Shown: positions 30,767 to 40,805 of the stretch, piece after piece | Position numbering within the stretch: the first letter of the stretch is position 1 | Layout: each line of letters starts with the position of its first letter | Assembly: GCA_965240325.2 (NCBI GenBank) | Contig: OZ251243.1 | Coordinates: forward strand, 124,001-188,000 | Reading direction: 5' to 3' | Origin: Rebecca billardiae RCC1528 | Lineage: Eukaryota; Protista; Haptophyta | DNA: 64,000 bases | The notes under the pieces: model-generated | Told to the model about the DNA's origin: nothing | The model's database searches: none | Seen by the model: the letters and a program-made list of their open reading frames with translations, nothing else | Translations under genes and position numbers: made by a program

Positions 30767-32526
30767 TCAATGCTGCGCGCGCGCGCCGTACACATCGTCG
30801 CCGACCCAGTCGGCCGGCCGGGGCTCGGAGACGAACCGCGGGGCGCCGCGGACCGTGTGCGTCGCCGCGCGCTGTGCGGCCGGCCTGATCAAGGTCTCGT
30901 CCATCGCGCCGCAGAACTGACCGACCAGCAACAGCGTGGCCAGCTCAGCCGAGAACAGCATGCTTGGGAAGTTGTTCTTCACCGCGCGCTCGTGCGTGAG
31001 CTCGAGGTCCACGGCGCGCTGCGCGAGCGATGCGGGCACGCTGCCCGACTTCTCGAAGGCCATGTCGTGCACGCGGCAGCGCTCGAGGCGCGCGCGGAAG
31101 GTGCCCGCCCGGTGGAGCTGCGGCGCGATGCCCGGCGCGAGGGCCCCCGCGCGCTCGAGCTTCCCCTCGTGCGCGATGTGGTTGACCGGGGCGATCGCCT
31201 CGTCGCGCGCGCGCGAGGCGCGGCCCGCGGCGTCAAGCAGGCCGTGCGCGGCGATCAACCACGCCGCGCCGCGCACGACCTCGTGCTGCTGCACCATCGA
31301 GCCGTCCCCGCCGGGCCGCGCGGCGAGCGGCACGCTGCGCGTGTACGCGATCGTCGGGTCGCGAATGCCGCACGCGCCGCACACGTGCATCGTGACCGCG
31401 CCGTCCGCGCGCGCGAACGCCCCCGTGACGCGCGCCACGTCCGCGTCGGTGAGCTCCGCGCACGCGCGAATGTCCGCCTTGACCTCCACGACCGTGGCGG
31501 CGTGATCCGGCGCGTCGGGCGGGCGCGCGGCGAGGCGCATGCTGTTCGCCACGCGGAAGCCGCCCGTCGACGCGTGGTAGTCGTGCAGCAGCTGCAGCTC
31601 TGGCCGGCGCGTGGGGTTGCGCGTGCGTCGTGCGCGCTGCTGCCGCCGCGCGCCGTGTTGGCGCGCGACCGCGTCGGTCGCGGCGGGGTCGCGCGCCACG
31701 CGCGGGGCGGCTCGTTGCGCGCGGCGTGTGTCGCGACGCTCCGCGTTGCGCGCCTCGTCCACGTCGTTCAGCGTGCTCGCCAGCCGCGCGCGCAGCTGCG
31801 CGAGGCACGCGTCGAGCGCCGCCGGCGTCTCGCAGCTTGGGTGCGAGGCCGCGGGCGCGCGCGCGCCCGAACGCGTGGCGTCGTGCGGCTGCACGGCGAG
31901 ACGCGCCAGCTCGACAAACGGCTCGTCGCGCAGTTCGGACGCGCGCAGCCCGGCGACGCGCTCGTCCCAGCGCGCGACGTGTTTGGACAGCGCGTCCGAA
32001 ATGCGCGCGCCGCCCGCGTCGCCCACGCCGCGGTACCGGCGAATGAGAATGGCCAGGGCTGCACGCACGTTGGCGAACTGCGCTCACGCCGCCGCGCTCC
32101 GCTTCCTCATCTGCACGACACACGCCGCGTACAGCACGAACAAATCGATCTCGTGCACGACATCGCCAGCCGACGCGGCCATGTCGAGCACGGCGGTGAA
32201 GACACTCTCGTCGCCCTCGTCGAGGCGGGAGTTTGGGGAAGGGCGTAAAGGCGGTACCGGGTAGGGGGTACCGTAAGATCGCCGCCAGATTTGTGGGAAT
32301 CGCAACGACATCCCTATAGCGCGCGCTCAAAAAGGTAACGACATGCGTTCTCGATTCCCGAGGCGTGCCTAATCAAAAAACGTTTGAGGCCCCATTCTTC
32401 GTATTCCTACTCCGGTATTACTTTGGACAGCAGTAGGTGACACCCAATTAAAGGGGGTCGGAGCTGGGTCTCCCAGGGCTTTGTCACGAATTAAAATTGT
32501 TTAAAGCTGTGTTCACCAGAATTAGA
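30767..32526 (-). pseudogene. Probable Helitron-like remnant: disrupted ORF with a candidate 5' TC terminus
   Basis: GC3-rich minus frame from ATG 32182 with one in-frame TGA (32084-32086). Contains LLHDYHASTGGFR and MHVCGACGIRD, resembling the N-terminal CxxC region of Helitron RepHel. A|TCTAATT at 32527/32526 fits a Helitron 5' end. No Rep/helicase core or CTRR 3' end found. Confidence 0.4.
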
Positions 32527-33070
32527 TGCGATTATTTTATGATAGACAGTCTGCGCGTCAGCGGGTCGGCCCAGCAGCGCAGCGGCACTTGCGTGCTGGG
32601 CCGCGGTCGCGGCGCCACTGCGGGCGCCGCGCCCCACGGCGCCGCCCCGCGCCGCCGCGTGGCGCCGTCAGGCCGCGTGGTCAGCGCGGGCGGCACCGCC
32701 AGGTGAGTGCCGTCCGGTCGGAAAGCGAAGTTCCGGCGTGATGTCGCTCGCAACCCGTGCCCGATAGGCGAGTAGTCGGACACACCACGCCGTGCGGGGC
32801 AGCCTGCAGCGGCGCAGCGGCCACGTCAGAGGACCCGCGGAGATGCACTGAGAGACCGAGTCAGACTGCCGACCGGCCGCGCAGTCCGTGAAGGGCGCAT
32901 TGCGAGGCCAGCGTTGCTCAGTGCGTCGTCGCGCCGAGCACGGGGGCGGGCCGTCAACGCCGCAGCGGGTAGGAGTGCATACCGGGCGGAGGGTGCGGAC
33001 GTGCGGCCCAGGTGCGTGCGTGCATCACACTCGCGAGGTTGGAGACAGCGGCGATCGGCAGTCGGAGTCA

Positions 33071-34952
33071 TCACGCGACGCCCATGGCCTTGCGCATCTC
33101 TGCAGCCGTGCCCACTGTCTGCCGCTGGCCGCGGCCGCGCGTCTGCAGGTGCGCGCGCGGCGAGCGGCGCGCCGATTCGGGCGTCACCTCCTCCTCCTCC
33201 GCGTCGTCGCACTCGGCGCACTCCGCCGAGTCGTGCGCGTTCGTGCGCAGTGACGACTTGAGCAGCCCTCTGCCCGCGCCGCGGTGCGCGAGCGCCCGTC
33301 GAGAACAGAAGGGACACGCGGAGTGGTGCAGGGCGAGGAGCTCCATCGAGTAGAGCGTGAAGGTGGACTGGCGCACCACCATCGCGTAGTCCGTGAGCTG
33401 CAGCAGCGCCATCTCCAGCCGGTGCAGCTCCACCGCCGAGAGGTGGTACATCTTCAGCGCGGAGACGAAGTCCTCCACCCACACCTGCTCGTCGTCTGCG
33501 CGCGCACAGGCGATGAGGCAAGGCGCACACGCACGCGCACACGCACACGCACACGCACGCGCGCGCGCGAGCACGCGCAGGCGGGCGGGCGGGCGGAGGG
33601 AGAGCGCGTGAGGGACGGCGGCGGCGGCGGCGGGTGCGAGGGGCGCGCGCGGGGCTGCCGCCGCGCGCCCTCTCCGCGCGCGCACAGTGCGCCTTGGACG
33701 CGACGATGATCGAGGTGAGCAGCAGACTCTTCCAGTTTGTGTGGCTGAGCCGCAGCCCGGAGCGGCGCGTCGCGCGCTCGAGGAAGATGACGGCCTCGAT
33801 GGCGACGGGCATGTCGAGCGTGTTGTTGATGATCAGCACCATCAGGAAGCGGTAGATGCGCTCGGGCGTCGCGCGCGGCGCCACCTCGCCCGGCGCCACC
33901 TGCTCCTCGAAGAGAGCCGCCGCCTGCGCGTCGGGCGCGCGGGCGCGCGGGCGCGCGCGCGGTGGCGGCGCGTCAGCCGGTGGCGGCGGCGGCGGCGGCG
34001 GCGGCGGGGGTGCGGTTGCGCGCGAGGGGGCGCGCGGCGGCGGGCCGGGTGCGCGGCGCGCGCGCGCGCGCGCGCGCACGTCCTCGAGCTCGGGCGTCAT
34101 CTGCTCCTTCACCACCTCGCGGTCCGTCGTCTCGACGTGCACGGCGAGCGCGAGCGCCGCGCCCATCGCCAGCGCGTGCACGGCCGCTGACGTGTGCGAC
34201 CAGTCCACGTCAGACCCGCCCGCGCCGACGGCGGCGGGCGGGGCGGCGCCCGCGCCGGCGCCCGCGCCGGCGCGCGCGATCGAACGGGCGCCGGAGACGC
34301 GCTGCCGCGGCGCGGACGCCGCCCGTCTCCGCTCCGCCGGCTGCCCGTCCGCGGCCGCCCAGGAGGGCGCCGCCTGCGCGGCCGCGTGGTGCACGTCGAG
34401 CGAGCACGAGAGCAGCGCGTTCGCGACGCGGCTGGCCTGCGAGGCGGCGTGCAGCGTGACCTGCGGCCGGCCGGGCAGGCGGCGCCCGTCGCGCGTCGCG
34501 TCCGCCTGGAAGTACGGCCGCAGCACCGTGCGCCGCACCGGCTTGGAGAGCACGGCGGTCGCGCCCATGCTCTCGCACTTGAGCCGCTGCTCGTCGGTCG
34601 CGCAGCCGGTCACCATCACGATCGAGCAGGGCCAGCCGGAGGAGGTGAGCAGGCTGAGCAGCGCGTCGCCGGGCGCCTCGGGCATCACGATGTCGCAGAA
34701 GATGCGCGTGAACGTCACGCACCCGTTGTCGCCGATGTCGGTCTGCAGCGCCTTGAGGCCCTCGGCGACCGACGAGCACGTCGTCACCGCGACGCCGAGC
34801 GCGGTGAGGAGCGACTCGAGCCGGCGGCGGGCGACGGGGTCGTCGTCGATGATGAGAGCGGTCGGCGTGGCCGTGAAGATCGCGCCCGACGCCACGCCCG
34901 TCGTGGGCACGACGCCGCGCTCGGCGCGGTCGCTAACGCGCGCGTGCACCAT
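33071..34952 (-). CDS. Response-regulator receiver (REC) domain fused to a cyclin Y/PHO80-family cyclin box, about 511 aa, 3 exons
   Basis: Exons 34952-34080, 33923-33686 and 33495-33071 (GT-AG). REC: LIIDDDP, IFCDIVMP, IVMVTG, LSKPV. Cyclin Y-like: ERIYRFL, VIFLERA, TNWKSLLLTSIIVASKAHYDEQVWVEDF, ELHRLEMALLQLTDY. Confidence 0.85.
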
Positions 34953-36855
34953 CGCTGGCGACGCTCACGCGGTGAGCTGCGGTGTGGCGCGCGGCGGGGG
35001 GCCGCGTGCGTGTGCGAGGAGGCGCGGTGTGCGCCTCGGCTGCTGCTGGCTGCCGGACGCGCTCGCTGGCGCAGCCCGTCGATGCAGCCGCTTGTTCGCG
35101 CGCGCTCGGAGCGAGGGCGCGAGGGTTGCGTTGCTGGGGCGACCGAGCCAGCACGAGTGAGATCAGACGGTTCGCAGGCTGCGCAAGGCGGGTTCGGGTA
35201 CAAAGATATGTCGAATATGACGATCGCTGGGTATGGATTATCAACTCCTCACCGAGGTCGGGGGGTGGGTCGCATGATTGCAGATATGGCCGGTAGGACC
35301 AGCTTCCCTAGGAGGGTCACCCCGAACGTGAACCGCTAATTACTTCTGAGAGTACGCGCGAGGGTTTCCGAAGAAGCACGGATGTATCGGCCCCGAACTG
35401 ACTAGTGAGATTGCAAGGAAGGCGTGCAAAAGTGCTGTAGGCCAACCAACCCCCGAGAAGGTGCGACAAAGATCTCACCACCCGAAGGGAAGATTTGGGC
35501 TTTTTGGGTTTTTTCGGATTCGTCAGAATGACGAGCGCAATCTAACACCCGAATACTTGGTAGGATACCGCCACAAACCAATTGATCAGCATGAATAGTG
35601 CTCAGACGACAGACGGTGATTCTGCATTAGCCTAATGAGGCGGGAACGATGAATCAGCTGACGGCATGGAGATTCCTCCATAGGTGTTGCCAGGTTGCGT
35701 CAATTCGTCCTCAAATTGTGCGTGATGATTACCCCAGATTCGGGGATGGGGCGAGGTATTCATATCCACCGCATTTGTCCGGAATTAGACGAAACGATAA
35801 GAACTCGACCTGGCCGGAGGTCAGTTCACCAGATCAAATATACCGCCTGGGTGTACTCAGCTTACTCATCGCTATGAATTTCGACGAAATGCTTCAATCC
35901 CCTATCTATATATCGTCCGGTGCCTTGGGCGGTCCGGTTGCGCAAAGCTCTGGCCGCGCGAGCCGACTGTCCCGATCATTGTGTGTCACGGTATGAGTGT
36001 GAGGTTGCTCACTGATGCATTATAACACTATTCACTGTGTCCTGCTGTTGATCTTTGAGGTCATACCAAGGTCAGTCCTGGGGCCGGAGCGTCTGCCTCG
36101 TCTCTCCCGCTGACCGACGCTGGCCGCTGCCGCTGGTCCGCCGCAGCGTGACTCTCCGAGACTCTCACTCAGTCGCAGCAGACATATCTAATGCCTGTAA
36201 TCATCAGAGACTGATTGCCACATGCTTATATTTATAATTGCTTAATGCTAGTTCACGCCAGCCCGCGGAGCGCCGAGCGGCCGGTCCACGGTCCAGGACG
36301 CGTAACAAGTCTCAGTCAACGACAACGAGCGCGGCCGCTCGTCACGCTTGGCCTCACTGCCGGTCGGCCGGCTGCCAGCGGTCCGCGCCCGTCGGGTGCG
36401 GGGGCATGGCGTCGGGCAGGGGCACGTGCGGCCCAGCGGGCCCCGAGGGCGGCATGGCGCCGTTGCTCCCAGCCAGCCGCGCGCGCGAGCGGCACCGCGC
36501 TGCGCCCAGCGCCTGTGAGCAGCGGTGTGGCGGCGGACGGGTGCCGTGCGCGTACCCGCCGCGCGGCAGCTGCCGCGTGCGGACGATTCTGGCCGCACGA
36601 CGTCCTCACCACCCCGGGGCGCCGAGCCTGCTGCCCACGCCTGACGCCACGGCAGACACGCCCCCGGCGGGGGCGGGGCGCGCCCGCCGCTCCGACCGCA
36701 ACCGTTGGGCGCGGGGCTGCGCGCCTTGCGCGCGCAGCCGAGCAAGCGGTGGCCGGTTCGCGCCGGCGGGATCCCCAGGGCGCGGGGGCGGGCGTGCCCA
36801 CGACACGCCGGGCGCGAGCCCCGCCGCGAGTGCGCCGGCCCGCACGCCCGCGCCG

Positions 36856-37488
36856 TCACGGCGCCGCGGGCCCGGCCTGGCGCGCGCGCTTGGCCGCCCT
36901 GGCCGCCTCCGCCTTGGCGCGCATGCGCTCGCGCATCTGCGCGCCAAAGTCGGCGGCGGCTGCGGACGAGGCCCCGGACGGGCGGGAGGGCGCGCCGGCC
37001 GGTGTGCTTGCGCCTCGACCAGCGCTCGGCTCGGACGCGCGTGCCCCGCCACCGCGTCCGCCCCGCACGCCGCCGCCGCTGCCACCGCGCCCAAAGTGCG
37101 CGCTCGGCGGCGCCGCGCCGAGCGCCGAGCCCAGCGAGGCCCAGCGTGCCACGCGCTCCGCCTCGACGTCCTCGCCGTCGAGCAAGTCGGCACCTCGCTC
37201 GTCGGCCGCGGCTGCTCCGGCGCTCGCGGCGCCCCGCGCGCGACCATCGCCTGCGCGCTGCGGCTCGCCCGGCGGGCGCTCGCCGAGCGCGTCGGCAAAC
37301 GCCGCCCAGCGCGCCGCGCGCTGCGCCTCCGTGTCCTCCGCGTCGTCGGCGCCGGCCTGCGCGCGGGGAGCCGCCGCAGGCGCCTCGCTGCTCGGAGCGT
37401 GTGGCGCGCCGTCCGCCTCGGCATCGCCGCGCGGCGTCGCCCCGTCCTCCGCGTCGGTCGCGTCCCTCGGGCGCTTGGCAGGCTCCAT
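36856..37488 (-). CDS. Hypothetical low-complexity protein (210 aa)
   Basis: ATG at 37488 (MEPAKRPR), GC3-rich, repeated motif EAQRAARWA/EAERVARWA; divergent from the Kelch gene. Confidence 0.6.
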   Translation of the reverse strand: MEPAKRPRDATDAEDGATPRGDAEADGAPHAPSSEAPAAAPRAQAGADDAEDTEAQRAARWAAFADALGERPPGEPQRAGDGRARGAASAGAAAADERGADLLDGEDVEAERVARWASLGSALGAAPPSAHFGRGGSGGGVRGGRGGGARASEPSAGRGASTPAGAPSRPSGASSAAAADFGAQMRERMRAKAEAARAAKRARQAGPAAP

Positions 37489-37901
37489 CCTGCCCGGTCG
37501 AGTCAAAAGGGCGAAAAGGCCGTCGCTCGCGCCAATCTGGATCCGGGGAGTGTGAGCGGCATTGATCAAAAGCGAGATCGAACATGGCGCTTCGATAGGA
37601 GCGGCTCGACCCGAATTTGTAGTCGCCGGAGCACCGCGTTCGCGCCAGCCAATCACCACCCTGGCCAGTTGTCCCAGGAGTGGCCCGCGCGAGGTGTGTT
37701 CGGGGCGCTCTGGGCCACAAACGAGCCCTCTTTCTTCCAAAAAGATCATTTCGCCACGGCCTTCGCGCATCTCAGATCGCGCTCTCTCGGCCGGGCGGGT
37801 CCACCTGCCGCCTCGTACTCCCCCGGGCGGGTGCTGCCCCTGCGCCCGTCCCCGCCCGCCGCCCCCCTTGCGCGAGGCGCTCGTGCCGCGGCGCGGGGCC
37901 G

Positions 37902-40805
37902 ATGCGCACGCGCCGCATGACGCCCGCGGCGCAGGGCGACTCGCTTCTCCTCGCGTGCAACGACGAGTGCCTGTGGACCATCGCGCACCGCCTCTCCGCG
38001 CCCGACCTGATTCGGCTCTCGCTCGCGTGCTCGCAGACGCTCGCGCTCGCGCGCGCGGTCGCGGAGGCGAAGCTGCGCACGCGCTGGTCGGCGTGGCGGC
38101 GGAGGATCGCGTCCGGCGAGTCGCTCCTCGTCCAGCTCGCCGCCTCCGAGCTCTCCTGCCTCCTCGCCATCGGCGGCACGTGGAAGGCGGAGGACTACTG
38201 GGGCTCGGAGCAGGTGCACACCTCTGCCACCGCCTCGGTCGAGGCGACGTTCGTGCGCGCGGTGCCGCGCGGCGGCGGGCGCGGCGGCTCGTCGAGCCGT
38301 GACGCCGCCGCGCCGCTCGCCGACGCCGACGCCGAGCTGCCCGCCGTCGCCGCCACCGCCGCGACCGCGGCCGGCGGCGCGGCGTGCGCGGGCGGCGCCG
38401 CCGCCGCCGCCGCGCCCGCCGCGCCCGCCGCGGCGGCGGCGGCGGCGTCGGCGGCGGGCGAGGTGGGCCTCGCGTGGCGCGCGGACGTGCGCCCGCTCCC
38501 GTACGCCTGGCGCCGCGGCTGCACCGTCTCCCTCGAGAACCTCGTCCTCATCGCCGGCGGCTGCATCGCCAACCGCCAGACGTCGCTGTGCTACGCATAC
38601 GCGCCCGAGCACGGCGGCTGGGCGCGCGCGCCCGACCTGCGGCAGAAGCGGAACGTGGCGGCGGCGGCGGCGCACGGCGGCGCGCTGTGGATCATGGGCG
38701 GGTACGACGGCCTCGCCCACCTCGCCACCGTCGAGGTGCTCTGCCCGCCAGACGACGCCGAGCCGACGGCGGCGGGCGGCGGCGCGTCGGTGCCGCCGCC
38801 CGCCGCCGCGCACTCGGCGCGCGCGCGCGCGGCCGAGCCGGCGGCGGCGGGCGGCGTCGCCGATGCGCCCTCGGCGGCGCGGGTGCGCTCGCTGCGCCCT
38901 CGCCGCGCGCGCGGCGTCGCCGTCACCGCGTCCGCCGCGCACGCCGCGGGCCCAGCCGACGCGTCTGCGGCCACACCCGGCGGCGGCGGCGGCGACGGCG
39001 ACGGCGGCGGCGCGGCCGGCGGCGCGGCCGGCGGCTGCGGCCGGCGCGGCGCGGGCTGCGCGCAGGCGAGCAGCCTCGAGGCGGAGCTGGGCACGTGGAC
39101 GTGGCGCTCGGCGCCGCCGCTGCACACCGCGCGCTCCAGCCTCGGCGTCGCCTCGCTCGGCGGCTGCCTCTACGCGGTCGGCGGCTATGGCTCGCCCGGC
39201 GCCGCGGCGGGCGGTCTTGGGGTGTTGCTCCCGACAGCGCTGCCCTCGGCGGAGGTGCTGAGGCCGGGGGCGGGCGCGTGGGAGCCGATCGCGCCGCTGG
39301 CGGAGGGGCGCTCGGACGTGGCGGTGGTGGCGTACCAGGGGCAGCTGCTCGCGATCGGCGGCGCGTCGGCCAGCGGCCGCGCGCTCGCAACAGTCGAAGC
39401 CTACGCGCCGCAGCCCGCGGCCGCGGCCGACGGTGGCGCGCCCGCCGCCGAGCCGGGCGGCGCGGCCGCGGCCCCCGGCGGCGGCGCGCTCGCGCTCGGC
39501 GGCGCGGCCGGCGCGCCCGCGGCCGAGGGCGCCGACGCCGGCGCGTCGGGCCCGCGCTGGGTGCGCGCGCCCAACCTCCTCGTCCCGCGCTCCGGCTGCG
39601 GCGCCGCAGTTGTGCGCGGCCGACTGATCGTGGTGGGCGGCAAGGGCCCGTCGTCTGTGCGGCTCTCGACCGCGGAGCTGTGGTGCCCCGGCGCGCGGCG
39701 CTGGGTGCTGGTGCAGTGCGCGCAGCCGCCGCACAGCGCGCTCGCGCCGAGCCCGCAGCAGCCCGCGGCCGAGCCGGGCGCGCCTGCCCTCGGCGTGTGG
39801 GCCGGCCGCTCGGCCCACGACCACAACCCTAACCACAACCCTAACCACAACCCTAACCCTAACCCTAATGCGCCGCACCTCGTCCAGCGAGCGCTCGCCG
39901 AGAGCGCCGCGCCGCGCCGACCGCCGCCGCCGACGGCCGCCGAGCCCACAGAGCGCTCGGCGGCGGGCGCGGCCGACGCGGCGGCGGCCGGCCCGAGCGG
40001 CGCGGCGGCGGCGCGCGCGCACGCGCCGCGCGCACCGGCGGAGCTCGCGCTGGGCCGGGCGGGCGGCGCGTCCGCGCCGGGCAAGCGCCGTGCGCGCGCC
40101 GCCGCCGCGCCGCGCTCGCCGCCACCGTGCGCGCGCACCTCGCAGCCCGCGCCGCCGCCGCCGCCGCTCGCGCTCGCGCCGCCGACGGGCGGCGCGCGCG
40201 TTGGCGCGGGCGCGGCGCCGCCCAAGCCCGGCGCGCTCGGCGCCGCGGCCGCCTTCTCAGCGGGCGACGGCCCCGGCTCGCCCTCGGCGGATGCGGCCGA
40301 CGGCGCCGACGGCGCCGCGGACTCGGGCCTGGCGCTGCCGCCGCCGTGCGACGCGTCAGACGCCACCGCGCCGCCGCCGCCGGCGGCGGCGCCGGCGGCG
40401 GCCGCCGCGCGCGCGCCGCCGGCCGGCGCCGCGGGCAAGCGCGCGCTGCGCTCCACCCTCGGCGCGCCGGCCGCGCGGCACGGCACGCGCGCGGGCGCGC
40501 GCGGCGGCGTGGGCGCCGAGGAGCCCAAGGGCTCGCCCGCCGGCGGCGTGCACGCAGCGCTCGCCACGCTCGCCGCCAGCCACAAGCCGAGCAGCGCGCC
40601 GGCGCCGGGCGCGGCGGTCGCGACGCGCGAGACGAGGCACGCCCACCTGGGCACGCCGCGCGACGCCTTTGGCCTCGTGGCGCTCGGCGCGTGCGGCGGG
40701 GGCGGCGCCGAGGGCAGCTGGTGGGGCGAGAGCGACGACGACGAGGGCGGCGCGGACGGCGCGCCGCCGTGGGAAGACGGCTGGGGTGGCGCCGCCGAGA
40801 GCTGA
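37902..40805 (+). CDS. F-box-like/Kelch-repeat protein
   Basis: N-terminal LLLACNDECLWTIAHRLSAPDLIRLSLAC is F-box-like. Kelch GG motifs LIAGG, LWIMGGYDG, LYAVGGY, LLAIGG and LIVVGGK with W..xxPL..xR linkers. Confidence 0.85.
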   Translation: MRTRRMTPAAQGDSLLLACNDECLWTIAHRLSAPDLIRLSLACSQTLALARAVAEAKLRTRWSAWRRRIASGESLLVQLAASELSCLLAIGGTWKAEDYWGSEQVHTSATASVEATFVRAVPRGGGRGGSSSRDAAAPLADADAELPAVAATAATAAGGAACAGGAAAAAAPAAPAAAAAAASAAGEVGLAWRADVRPLPYAWRRGCTVSLENLVLIAGGCIANRQTSLCYAYAPEHGGWARAPDLRQKRNVAAAAAHGGALWIMGGYDGLAHLATVEVLCPPDDAEPTAAGGGASVPPPAAAHSARARAAEPAAAGGVADAPSAARVRSLRPRRARGVAVTASAAHAAGPADASAATPGGGGGDGDGGGAAGGAAGGCGRRGAGCAQASSLEAELGTWTWRSAPPLHTARSSLGVASLGGCLYAVGGYGSPGAAAGGLGVLLPTALPSAEVLRPGAGAWEPIAPLAEGRSDVAVVAYQGQLLAIGGASASGRALATVEAYAPQPAAAADGGAPAAEPGGAAAAPGGGALALGGAAGAPAAEGADAGASGPRWVRAPNLLVPRSGCGAAVVRGRLIVVGGKGPSSVRLSTAELWCPGARRWVLVQCAQPPHSALAPSPQQPAAEPGAPALGVWAGRSAHDHNPNHNPNHNPNPNPNAPHLVQRALAESAAPRRPPPPTAAEPTERSAAGAADAAAAGPSGAAAARAHAPRAPAELALGRAGGASAPGKRRARAAAAPRSPPPCARTSQPAPPPPPLALAPPTGGARVGAGAAPPKPGALGAAAAFSAGDGPGSPSADAADGADGAADSGLALPPPCDASDATAPPPPAAAPAAAAARAPPAGAAGKRALRSTLGAPAARHGTRAGARGGVGAEEPKGSPAGGVHAALATLAASHKPSSAPAPGAAVATRETRHAHLGTPRDAFGLVALGACGGGGAEGSWWGESDDDEGGADGAPPWEDGWGGAAES
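39821..39868 (+). repeat. Telomere-like (CCCTAA/CCACAA)n tract inside the Kelch CDS
   Basis: ccacaaccctaaccacaaccctaaccacaaccctaaccctaaccctaa, translating as HNPNHNPNHNPNPNPN. Confidence 0.85.

Follow-up and report, generated by a model that had tools for sequence, protein, structure and literature searches.

A receiver domain joined to a cyclin Y-like module in a single gene of a pavlovophyte-like haptophyte

Background

Two-component signalling and the control of cyclins and of cyclin-dependent kinases (CDKs) both rank among the best-studied regulatory systems, and to our knowledge they are known to meet in eukaryotes only indirectly, via transcription or via mitogen-activated protein kinase (MAPK) cascades. 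The links that lead from a phosphorelay to the cell cycle, namely those from cytokinin to CYCD3 transcription, from Skn7 to the expression of G1 cyclins and through Mcs4, are indirect, and the known outputs of eukaryotic receiver domains are DNA binding, binding of a MAPK kinase kinase (MAPKKK), phosphodiesterase activity and protein kinase activity. The yeast Pho80/Pcl-Pho85 cyclins couple an environmental (nutrient) signal to a CDK, but the signal enters there via a separate CDK inhibitor, Pho81, and not via a sensor domain fused to the cyclin. Here we describe a gene found in 64,000 nucleotides (nt) of contig OZ251243.1 of the haptophyte Rebecca billardiae RCC1528 (this whole stretch is called the window below), in which a two-component receiver domain (REC) and a cyclin Y-type module are encoded together. 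An earlier note, written from the letters of the window alone, had pointed to this locus, and we follow up its claims.

Animal cyclin Y proteins (CCNY/CCNYL1) are activators of the PCTAIRE/PFTAIRE kinases CDK14-18 (structure 9r2i; PMC13168255). Like them, the protein of the window has a single cyclin box, a preceding alpha-N helix, an FDE-like motif and C-terminal helices, but a receiver domain and a linker stand where animal cyclin Y has its entire N-terminal region. It also resembles the single-box cyclins of the yeast Pho80/Pcl-Pho85 group, which are its second-best structural and profile neighbours. As regards the receiver, its N-terminal position and full catalytic set are those of eukaryotic His-Asp response regulators (Ssk1, Skn7, Mcs4, plant ARRs, Dictyostelium RegA and the Rim15-type kinases), whereas the output domain, a cyclin, is not. 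The nearest precedent for a protist lineage-specific fusion of a cyclin to a signalling partner is offered by Phytophthora, ciliate and Theileria CDKs with integral cyclin domains, in which the fused kinase is probably inactive (PMC3019232). In those proteins the cyclin is joined to the kinase, while here it is joined to a domain of the upstream sensor pathway.

A single gene for both domains

The coding region lies on the minus strand, as do all features of the gene given below, at positions 33071..34952. The three-exon model begins with an ATG at 34952, ends with a stop codon at 33073..33071 and encodes 511 amino acids (aa), so the limits proposed in the earlier note were exact. Its product is 80% identical, end to end, to P0001, a complete open reading frame (ORF) of 512 aa from MMETSP. 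We are highly confident that this is an intact, expressed-type nuclear gene of a pavlovophyte-like haptophyte, with REC and the cyclin Y-type module in one polypeptide.

Exon 1 (34080..34952, aa 1-291) carries an N-terminal tail, the receiver, the linker and the alpha-N helix of cyclin Y type; exon 2 (33686..33923, aa 292-370 plus one base) carries an LFEE motif and, with W355 and K368, the first half of the cyclin box; exon 3 (33071..33495, aa 371-511 plus the stop codon) carries the second half of the box with E398, the C-terminal helices, a CPFC motif and an acidic/basic, poorly conserved tail. The frame that starts at 34952 is open down to 33686 and resumes in another frame after a GT...AG interval. 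This interval, intron 2 (33496..33685; 190 nt, phase 1), reads GTGCGC...GCGCAG from its donor GT at 33685 to its acceptor AG at 33496 and has a CA/CG microsatellite inside; its removal joins ...IIVASKAH to YDEQVWVEDF.... The same junction is found in the transcript ORFs of two relatives, P0001 (labelled 'type:complete', 512 aa) and P0003 (Pavlova sp. CCMP459), and it is precisely the one that the earlier note had placed here. Moreover, the P0001 gene is present in unspliced form on contig L001, where a 145-nt GTGCGC...GCGCAG intron sits at the homologous position and with the corresponding phase; once it is taken out, L001 reproduces P0001 residue for residue.

A further segment of 156 nt, 34079..33924, probably represents another intron (intron 1, phase 0), which is in frame, free of stop codons and likewise delimited by GTGCGC...GCGCAG. 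It is absent from P0001 and L001, and the GenBank model P0160 (KAJ1638119.1) is continuous across the site with no counterpart of the 156-nt segment. On contig L002, where P0004 and P0007 lie on one strand as parts of the homologous gene, this site holds an interruption of about 150 nt, which must be spliced because the frame changes across it. With a cyclin Y-family profile, the window's protein scores 129.1 bits as long as the segment is included and 135.9 bits once it is removed. From these sequences, the presence of the intron varies among relatives, since L002 has it at this position and L001 does not. If retained, the segment would place between the alpha-N helix and the cyclin box a 52-residue insert rich in Pro, Arg and Ala, in which 11 Pro stand in a row.

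It had been argued in the earlier note that one uninterrupted ORF holds REC together with the first half of the box, and that the fusion is for this reason independent of any splice model. The frame is literally open over this distance, but only because the 156-nt probable intron happens to be in frame, and the uninterrupted ORF is therefore probably a coincidence. The case for the fusion now rests on firmer ground, the transcripts of relatives. Both introns contain CA/CG- and GC-rich simple repeats (33519-33644 and 33929-34092). The one listed RNA run gave a single 189-nt contig, which is identical to 33124-33312 and is uninformative on splicing.

Both domains are present on complete transcript ORFs of relatives, namely P0001, P0003/P0152 (Pavlova sp. 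CCMP459) and P0009/P0155; separate transcripts for the two halves, which had been named beforehand as an outcome that would speak against a fusion, were not what these records contained. We also compared the codons of the window gene with those of L001 and calculated the ratio of nonsynonymous to synonymous substitution rates (dN/dS). The ratio is 0.23 for the whole gene (dS about 0.6), 0.07 for REC, the lowest value in the gene, and 0.14 for the cyclin Y-like module, with dS of about 0.5-0.6 in the comparisons of these two parts; the linker and the C-terminal tail gave 0.35 and 0.38, respectively. Both domains are kept by purifying selection in the fused state.

These observations bear on the possibility that the fusion is an artefact, that is, an error of gene model or assembly, or a chance ORF. 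The window is very GC-rich (GC of about 0.57-0.82 per 2-kb window), and such DNA yields many long spurious ORFs on both strands, none of the five scanned here having a Pfam match. However, independent transcriptomes and genomic contigs of several relatives contain this architecture too, and the position of the intron is conserved. With an exact junction and with purifying selection on both domains in addition, we consider this explanation effectively refuted.

The receiver domain

The receiver occupies aa 33-145 in exon 1 (34518..34856) and matches Pfam PF00072 (Response_reg) with E=1.7e-14 and 54.4 bits, against a gathering score of 30.2. The solved receivers that match best belong to RcsC, to SLN1 and to a fungal hybrid kinase. 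The acidic triad D36-D37-D38 (34839..34847), which would form the metal-binding pocket, is aligned to the DD of RcsC and is kept in 6/6 members of the canonical clade defined below. The predicted phospho-acceptor Asp87 (34692..34694), in the motif FCDIVMP, lines up with the acceptor Asp in the receivers of RcsC and SLN1, and HMMER alignments to solved receivers identify the putative switch Thr115 (34608..34610; MVTG) and Lys137 (34542..34544), which is followed by Pro138 (SKP). In these alignments D36-D38, D87, T115 and K137-P138 coincide with the catalytic positions of RcsC and SLN1, and the full catalytic set given in the earlier note (DDD, FCDIVMP, MVTG and SKP) is all there. Judging from its residues, the receiver appears to have everything needed to accept a phosphoryl group. 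The AlphaFold model of the full-length protein shows alternating helices and strands in the REC region, which is not reliable at the values of the predicted local distance difference test (pLDDT) found there, 30-58.

The cyclin Y-like module

Among solved structures, human CCNY is the only significant match, by sequence, to the C-terminal half of P0001 (E=2e-11), and the cyclin Y stretch quoted in the earlier note agrees with human CCNY in the PDB alignment. Identity of the module to animal cyclin Y is about 25%. We built an alignment (A2) of P0001 with 68 cyclin-type neighbours from an exhaustive profile search, 69 sequences in all, whose profile matches CCNY with an E-value of 1.2e-94, PHO80 with 3.5e-8 and cyclin A2 with 7e-4. 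In addition, a hidden Markov model (HMM) of the cyclin Y family was built only from 65 relatives that have no receiver. The spliced protein of the window scored 135.9 bits with this HMM, while 200 shuffles of the same region reached at most 3.2; exon 2 alone scored 64.6 bits and exon 3 alone 49.0. With Pfam Cyclin_N (gathering score 23), full-length P0001 reaches 20.7 bits and the isolated domain 24.2, and Pfam PF08613 gives 15-21 bits against a threshold of 21.

The structural comparison was made on residues 240-465 of P0001, the 80%-identical orthologue, which AlphaFold models from the A2 alignment with a pLDDT of 90.6. A Foldseek search with this model returned first CCNY in the CDK16:CCNY:14-3-3 complex (9r2i_D; E=6.5e-7, template modelling score 0.62), next CCNY:14-3-3 (9r2n_D), and then Pho80 and Pcl10. 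The orthologue model has the expected fold, with the alpha-N helix, a single cyclin box and the alpha-C helices. The earlier note had left room for a protein that no cyclin HMM would recognise; CCNY is instead the top match both by sequence and by fold, and the family profile recognises the module with the score given above. The C-terminal module is thus cyclin Y-like, which is more specific than "a cyclin".

The similarity to cyclin Y reaches upstream of the cyclin box and begins at about aa 205. The helix HTSAAVHALAMGAALALAVHVE (aa 253-274; 34131..34196) is the counterpart of the cyclin Y helix ahead of the box; it aligns with ...KCVALAIYYHI of the cyclin Y family and forms a long helix of high pLDDT in the model, and the LFEE motif of exon 2 aligns with the FDE motif of the family. 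Three residues, W355, K368 and E398, are invariant in 69/69 aligned sequences, the fusions included, and are the equivalents of CCNY W217, K225 and E253. In the CDK16:CCNY:14-3-3 structure K225 and E253 are the CDK-contacting and intramolecular pair, and W227, D229 and Y271 of CCNY lie at the interface with CDK16's activation segment (PMC13168255). Of these last three, the equivalent of D229 is kept, Y271 is replaced by Phe416 and W227 by His370. CCNY W227 matters for CDK16 activity, although it was tested there only in the W227A+Y271A double mutant. From this pattern of conservation, the module seems to retain the residues that hold the PSTAIRE-type helix of a CDK.

Directly after the cyclin module, at 33305-33319, lies the CPFC motif, which is kept in the canonical clade and appears as CPY in the pseudo-receiver clade. 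We considered a zinc ribbon at this position and rejected it: the Pfam IFT122 zinc ribbon scores 17.8 against a threshold of 27.3, the second Cys pair is not conserved in relatives and the model puts CPFC between two helices.

Distribution and origin of the fusion

A full-length profile of the family was searched against 1.84 billion representative proteins. This search gave 10 close family clusters (E<1e-27), followed by a sharp drop to proteins that have a receiver or a cyclin Y-like box. When separate REC and cyclin HMMs were run on 151 proteins, 150 of them from the profile search, both domains were found only in P0001, P0002, P0003, P0009 and P0047; other family matches are fragments of the same genes made by gene callers, for example P0004 plus P0007 on L002. 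The members with a taxon label come from Pavlova sp. CCMP459 and Pavlovales sp. CCMP2436, and the rest are unlabelled MMETSP, JGI or Logan records. In this search of 1.84 billion proteins the architecture was found only in a small family, which is pavlovophyte wherever it is labelled. A word-based search with the cyclin region returned close relatives only, and generic bacterial response regulators were all that the ESM Atlas yielded.

The family falls into two clades. The canonical one (the window protein, P0001, P0003, P0004, P0005 and P0008) has DDD, the acceptor D, T or S at the switch position and K-P. In the second (P0009, P0014, P0017, P0019 and P0021) the acidic pair is lost and K-P is kept; at the acceptor position Glu stands in place of Asp (Ala in P0009), and an acidic run comes after it. 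Degenerate acceptors of this kind are known from plant PRRs. The second clade, which is paralogous and does not include the window gene, is similar to plant PRR/TOC1 in that the acceptor Asp and the acidic pair are lost while K-P is kept, but its output is a cyclin and not a CCT domain, and the origin is independent. A more distant protein, P0047 (L003, 445-1764; Logan ERR14847148), is intronless and colinear over about 390 residues at about 25% identity, with a degenerate receiver; a word-based search with it found no other relatives. The five fusion proteins group together (99/92) in a maximum-likelihood tree built from the cyclin modules, which is consistent with a single origin of the fusion, although P0047 lies on a long branch.

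The contrast between the clades also helps to evaluate whether the receiver is ever phosphorylated. It could be a structural or pseudo-receiver even in the canonical clade, and the sister clade, which has lost the acidic pocket and the acceptor Asp and has kept the architecture, indicates that the fusion can work without phospho-Asp. On the other hand, the five catalytic positions, together with the DxxMP and KP signatures, are intact in 6 canonical sequences from several species, and the very low dN/dS of REC (0.07, the lowest in the gene) reflects a conservation that is hard to explain without catalysis. A receiver that is never phosphorylated in the canonical clade seems to us very improbable.

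Public annotation gives little indication of the fusion. Precomputed Pfam annotation reports only PF00072 for the canonical clade and only Cyclin_N for P0009, the JGI name of P0005 is 'CheY-like chemotaxis protein', and KAJ1638119.1 (P0160, Pavlovales sp. CCMP2436), named 'hypothetical protein', starts at the Met directly after the acceptor Asp, so that this N-terminally truncated model is without half of the receiver. Because Pfam thresholds catch one domain per clade and the GenBank model is truncated, surveys of domain architecture would have missed the fusion. The earlier note knew of no described REC-cyclin fusion, and this agrees with our search: no description of a receiver-cyclin fusion was found in the full-text literature, most subscription journals lying outside this search, and the public names are uninformative. 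As a domain architecture the fusion is new, and it may provide response regulators with a new output, although it is taxonomically narrow.

A possible mode of action and its alternatives

The two domains together suggest that phosphorelay input via Asp87 might switch the activation of a CDK by the cyclin module, a proposal for which, on the features of the protein described above, we see close to an even chance. An HPt (histidine-containing phosphotransfer) protein or a hybrid histidine kinase would phosphorylate Asp87; the receiver switch, on the face of T115 and K137, would alter the packing of receiver and linker on the cyclin module; the CDK-binding surface centred on K368 and E398 would be exposed or hidden; and a CDK of Pho85/CDK5/PCTAIRE type would thereby be switched on or off. 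In the sister clade, where the acceptor Asp has given way to Glu or Ala, the device would work independently of a phosphorelay and possibly in a phosphomimetic form. Our wider proposal is that a His-Asp phosphorelay phosphorylates a cyclin directly and that phospho-Asp gates a CDK with no transcription or kinase cascade in between, the pseudo-receiver copy being constitutively 'on' or 'off'; this we put forward tentatively, our judgement leaning somewhat against it.

There is a possible parallel in animals, where cyclin Y binds CDK16 only after phospho-Ser and 14-3-3 have rearranged the alpha4-alphaC1 loop and the C-terminal helices. Because CDK16 binding requires this 14-3-3-driven rearrangement, the CDK-binding surface of cyclin Y is intrinsically gateable, and, by analogy, the phospho-Asp gate would be the counterpart of the unmasking of the CDK16-binding surface by phospho-Ser/14-3-3. 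The linker of the window protein may hold a site of the same nature. The basic R-x-x-S-A-P motif RRRAASAPR (Ser213; 34305..34331) is kept in every canonical-clade member that covers the site, in an otherwise fast-evolving linker upstream of the alpha-N helix, and is possibly a 14-3-3 (mode-I) site or a site for a basophilic kinase. Its position is like that of Ser100 (RKRAS(100)) of CCNY, both being upstream of the alpha-N helix.

Other elements of animal cyclin Y have no equivalent here. The segment CCNY 38-53, which grips the N-terminal extension of CDK16 (PMC13168255), has no counterpart in the protein, in which the receiver and the start of the linker precede the homology to cyclin Y. The protein starts with MVHARV, followed by REC, and has no N-terminal Gly for myristoylation, whereas several aligned cyclin Y relatives begin with MG; in the alignment with the cyclin Y family, no RSxS-x-D 14-3-3 motif was found in the C-terminal tail. 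Since these N- and C-terminal elements are absent, the partner and the mode of activation may differ from those of animal cyclin Y.

A number of points weigh against a phosphorelay-gated CDK activator. The segment 38-53, the myristoylation signal and the C-terminal 14-3-3 site of CCNY are all missing, the equivalent of CCNY W227 is a His, and the Pfam cyclin scores are at or just under the gathering thresholds. Furthermore, the AlphaFold model of the full-length protein is poor (pLDDT 43, with a shallow family alignment) and unusable for contacts between REC and the cyclin.

Some of these points would fit a protein in which the cyclin fold is a CDK-independent output scaffold, the whole being a response regulator of the ordinary kind whose effector domain is unusual. 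Several cyclin-fold proteins are indeed known to act without CDKs, and the missing CDK16-gripping segment and 14-3-3 sites, the His in place of W227 and the borderline Pfam scores would all be in keeping with such a role. However, the family-invariant K/E pair and the Trp are kept in all fusion members, the cyclin module is under strong purifying selection and its nearest structural neighbours (CCNY, Pho80 and Pcl10) are all CDK-bound cyclins. We regard a CDK-independent scaffold as unlikely.

It could also be hypothesized that the cyclin module binds and activates its CDK constitutively and that the receiver controls something else, such as how stable the protein is, whether it dimerises, where it is localised, or how the CDK complex is recruited to a substrate or to a partner in the phosphorelay. 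Against this, the conservation, within each clade, of the pre-box helix and of the region after REC is compatible with an intramolecular interface. Yet receivers often work via dimerisation or partner binding, and the linker is long, fast-evolving (dN/dS 0.35) and, from its low pLDDT, predicted to be disordered, which argues against tight packing of REC; the conserved RxxSAP site also suggests an additional, independent regulation. Our estimate for this alternative is low, though not negligible.

Genomic surroundings

A 708-aa ORF at 32826..34952 was considered as the protein and rejected, being a read-through of both introns into another frame. Long, overlapping ORFs also surround the gene, at 30767-32330 and 36215-37920 (on both strands, 365-560 aa, rich in Arg and Ala); five of them were scanned and gave no Pfam match, and they were not accepted as genes. 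They look like spurious ORFs driven by GC content. No linked CDK, HPt or kinase gene was found beside the REC-cyclin gene among the five neighbouring ORFs scanned with Pfam. Directly upstream of the 5' end of the gene, at 35200-36200, there is a patch of lower GC with runs of T and no long ORF, which could be a promoter, an untranslated region or a repeat fragment.

Implications

The fusion exposes a blind spot of annotation. Within the family, a canonical clade coexists with a pseudo-receiver clade in which Asp is changed to Glu or Ala, and this gives a genetic contrast that occurs naturally. A receiver-cyclin fusion would be the shortest possible wire from an environmental sensor to a CDK and, if the proposed gating is true, it would add a new class to the known outputs of response regulators and a new principle to the control of cyclins.

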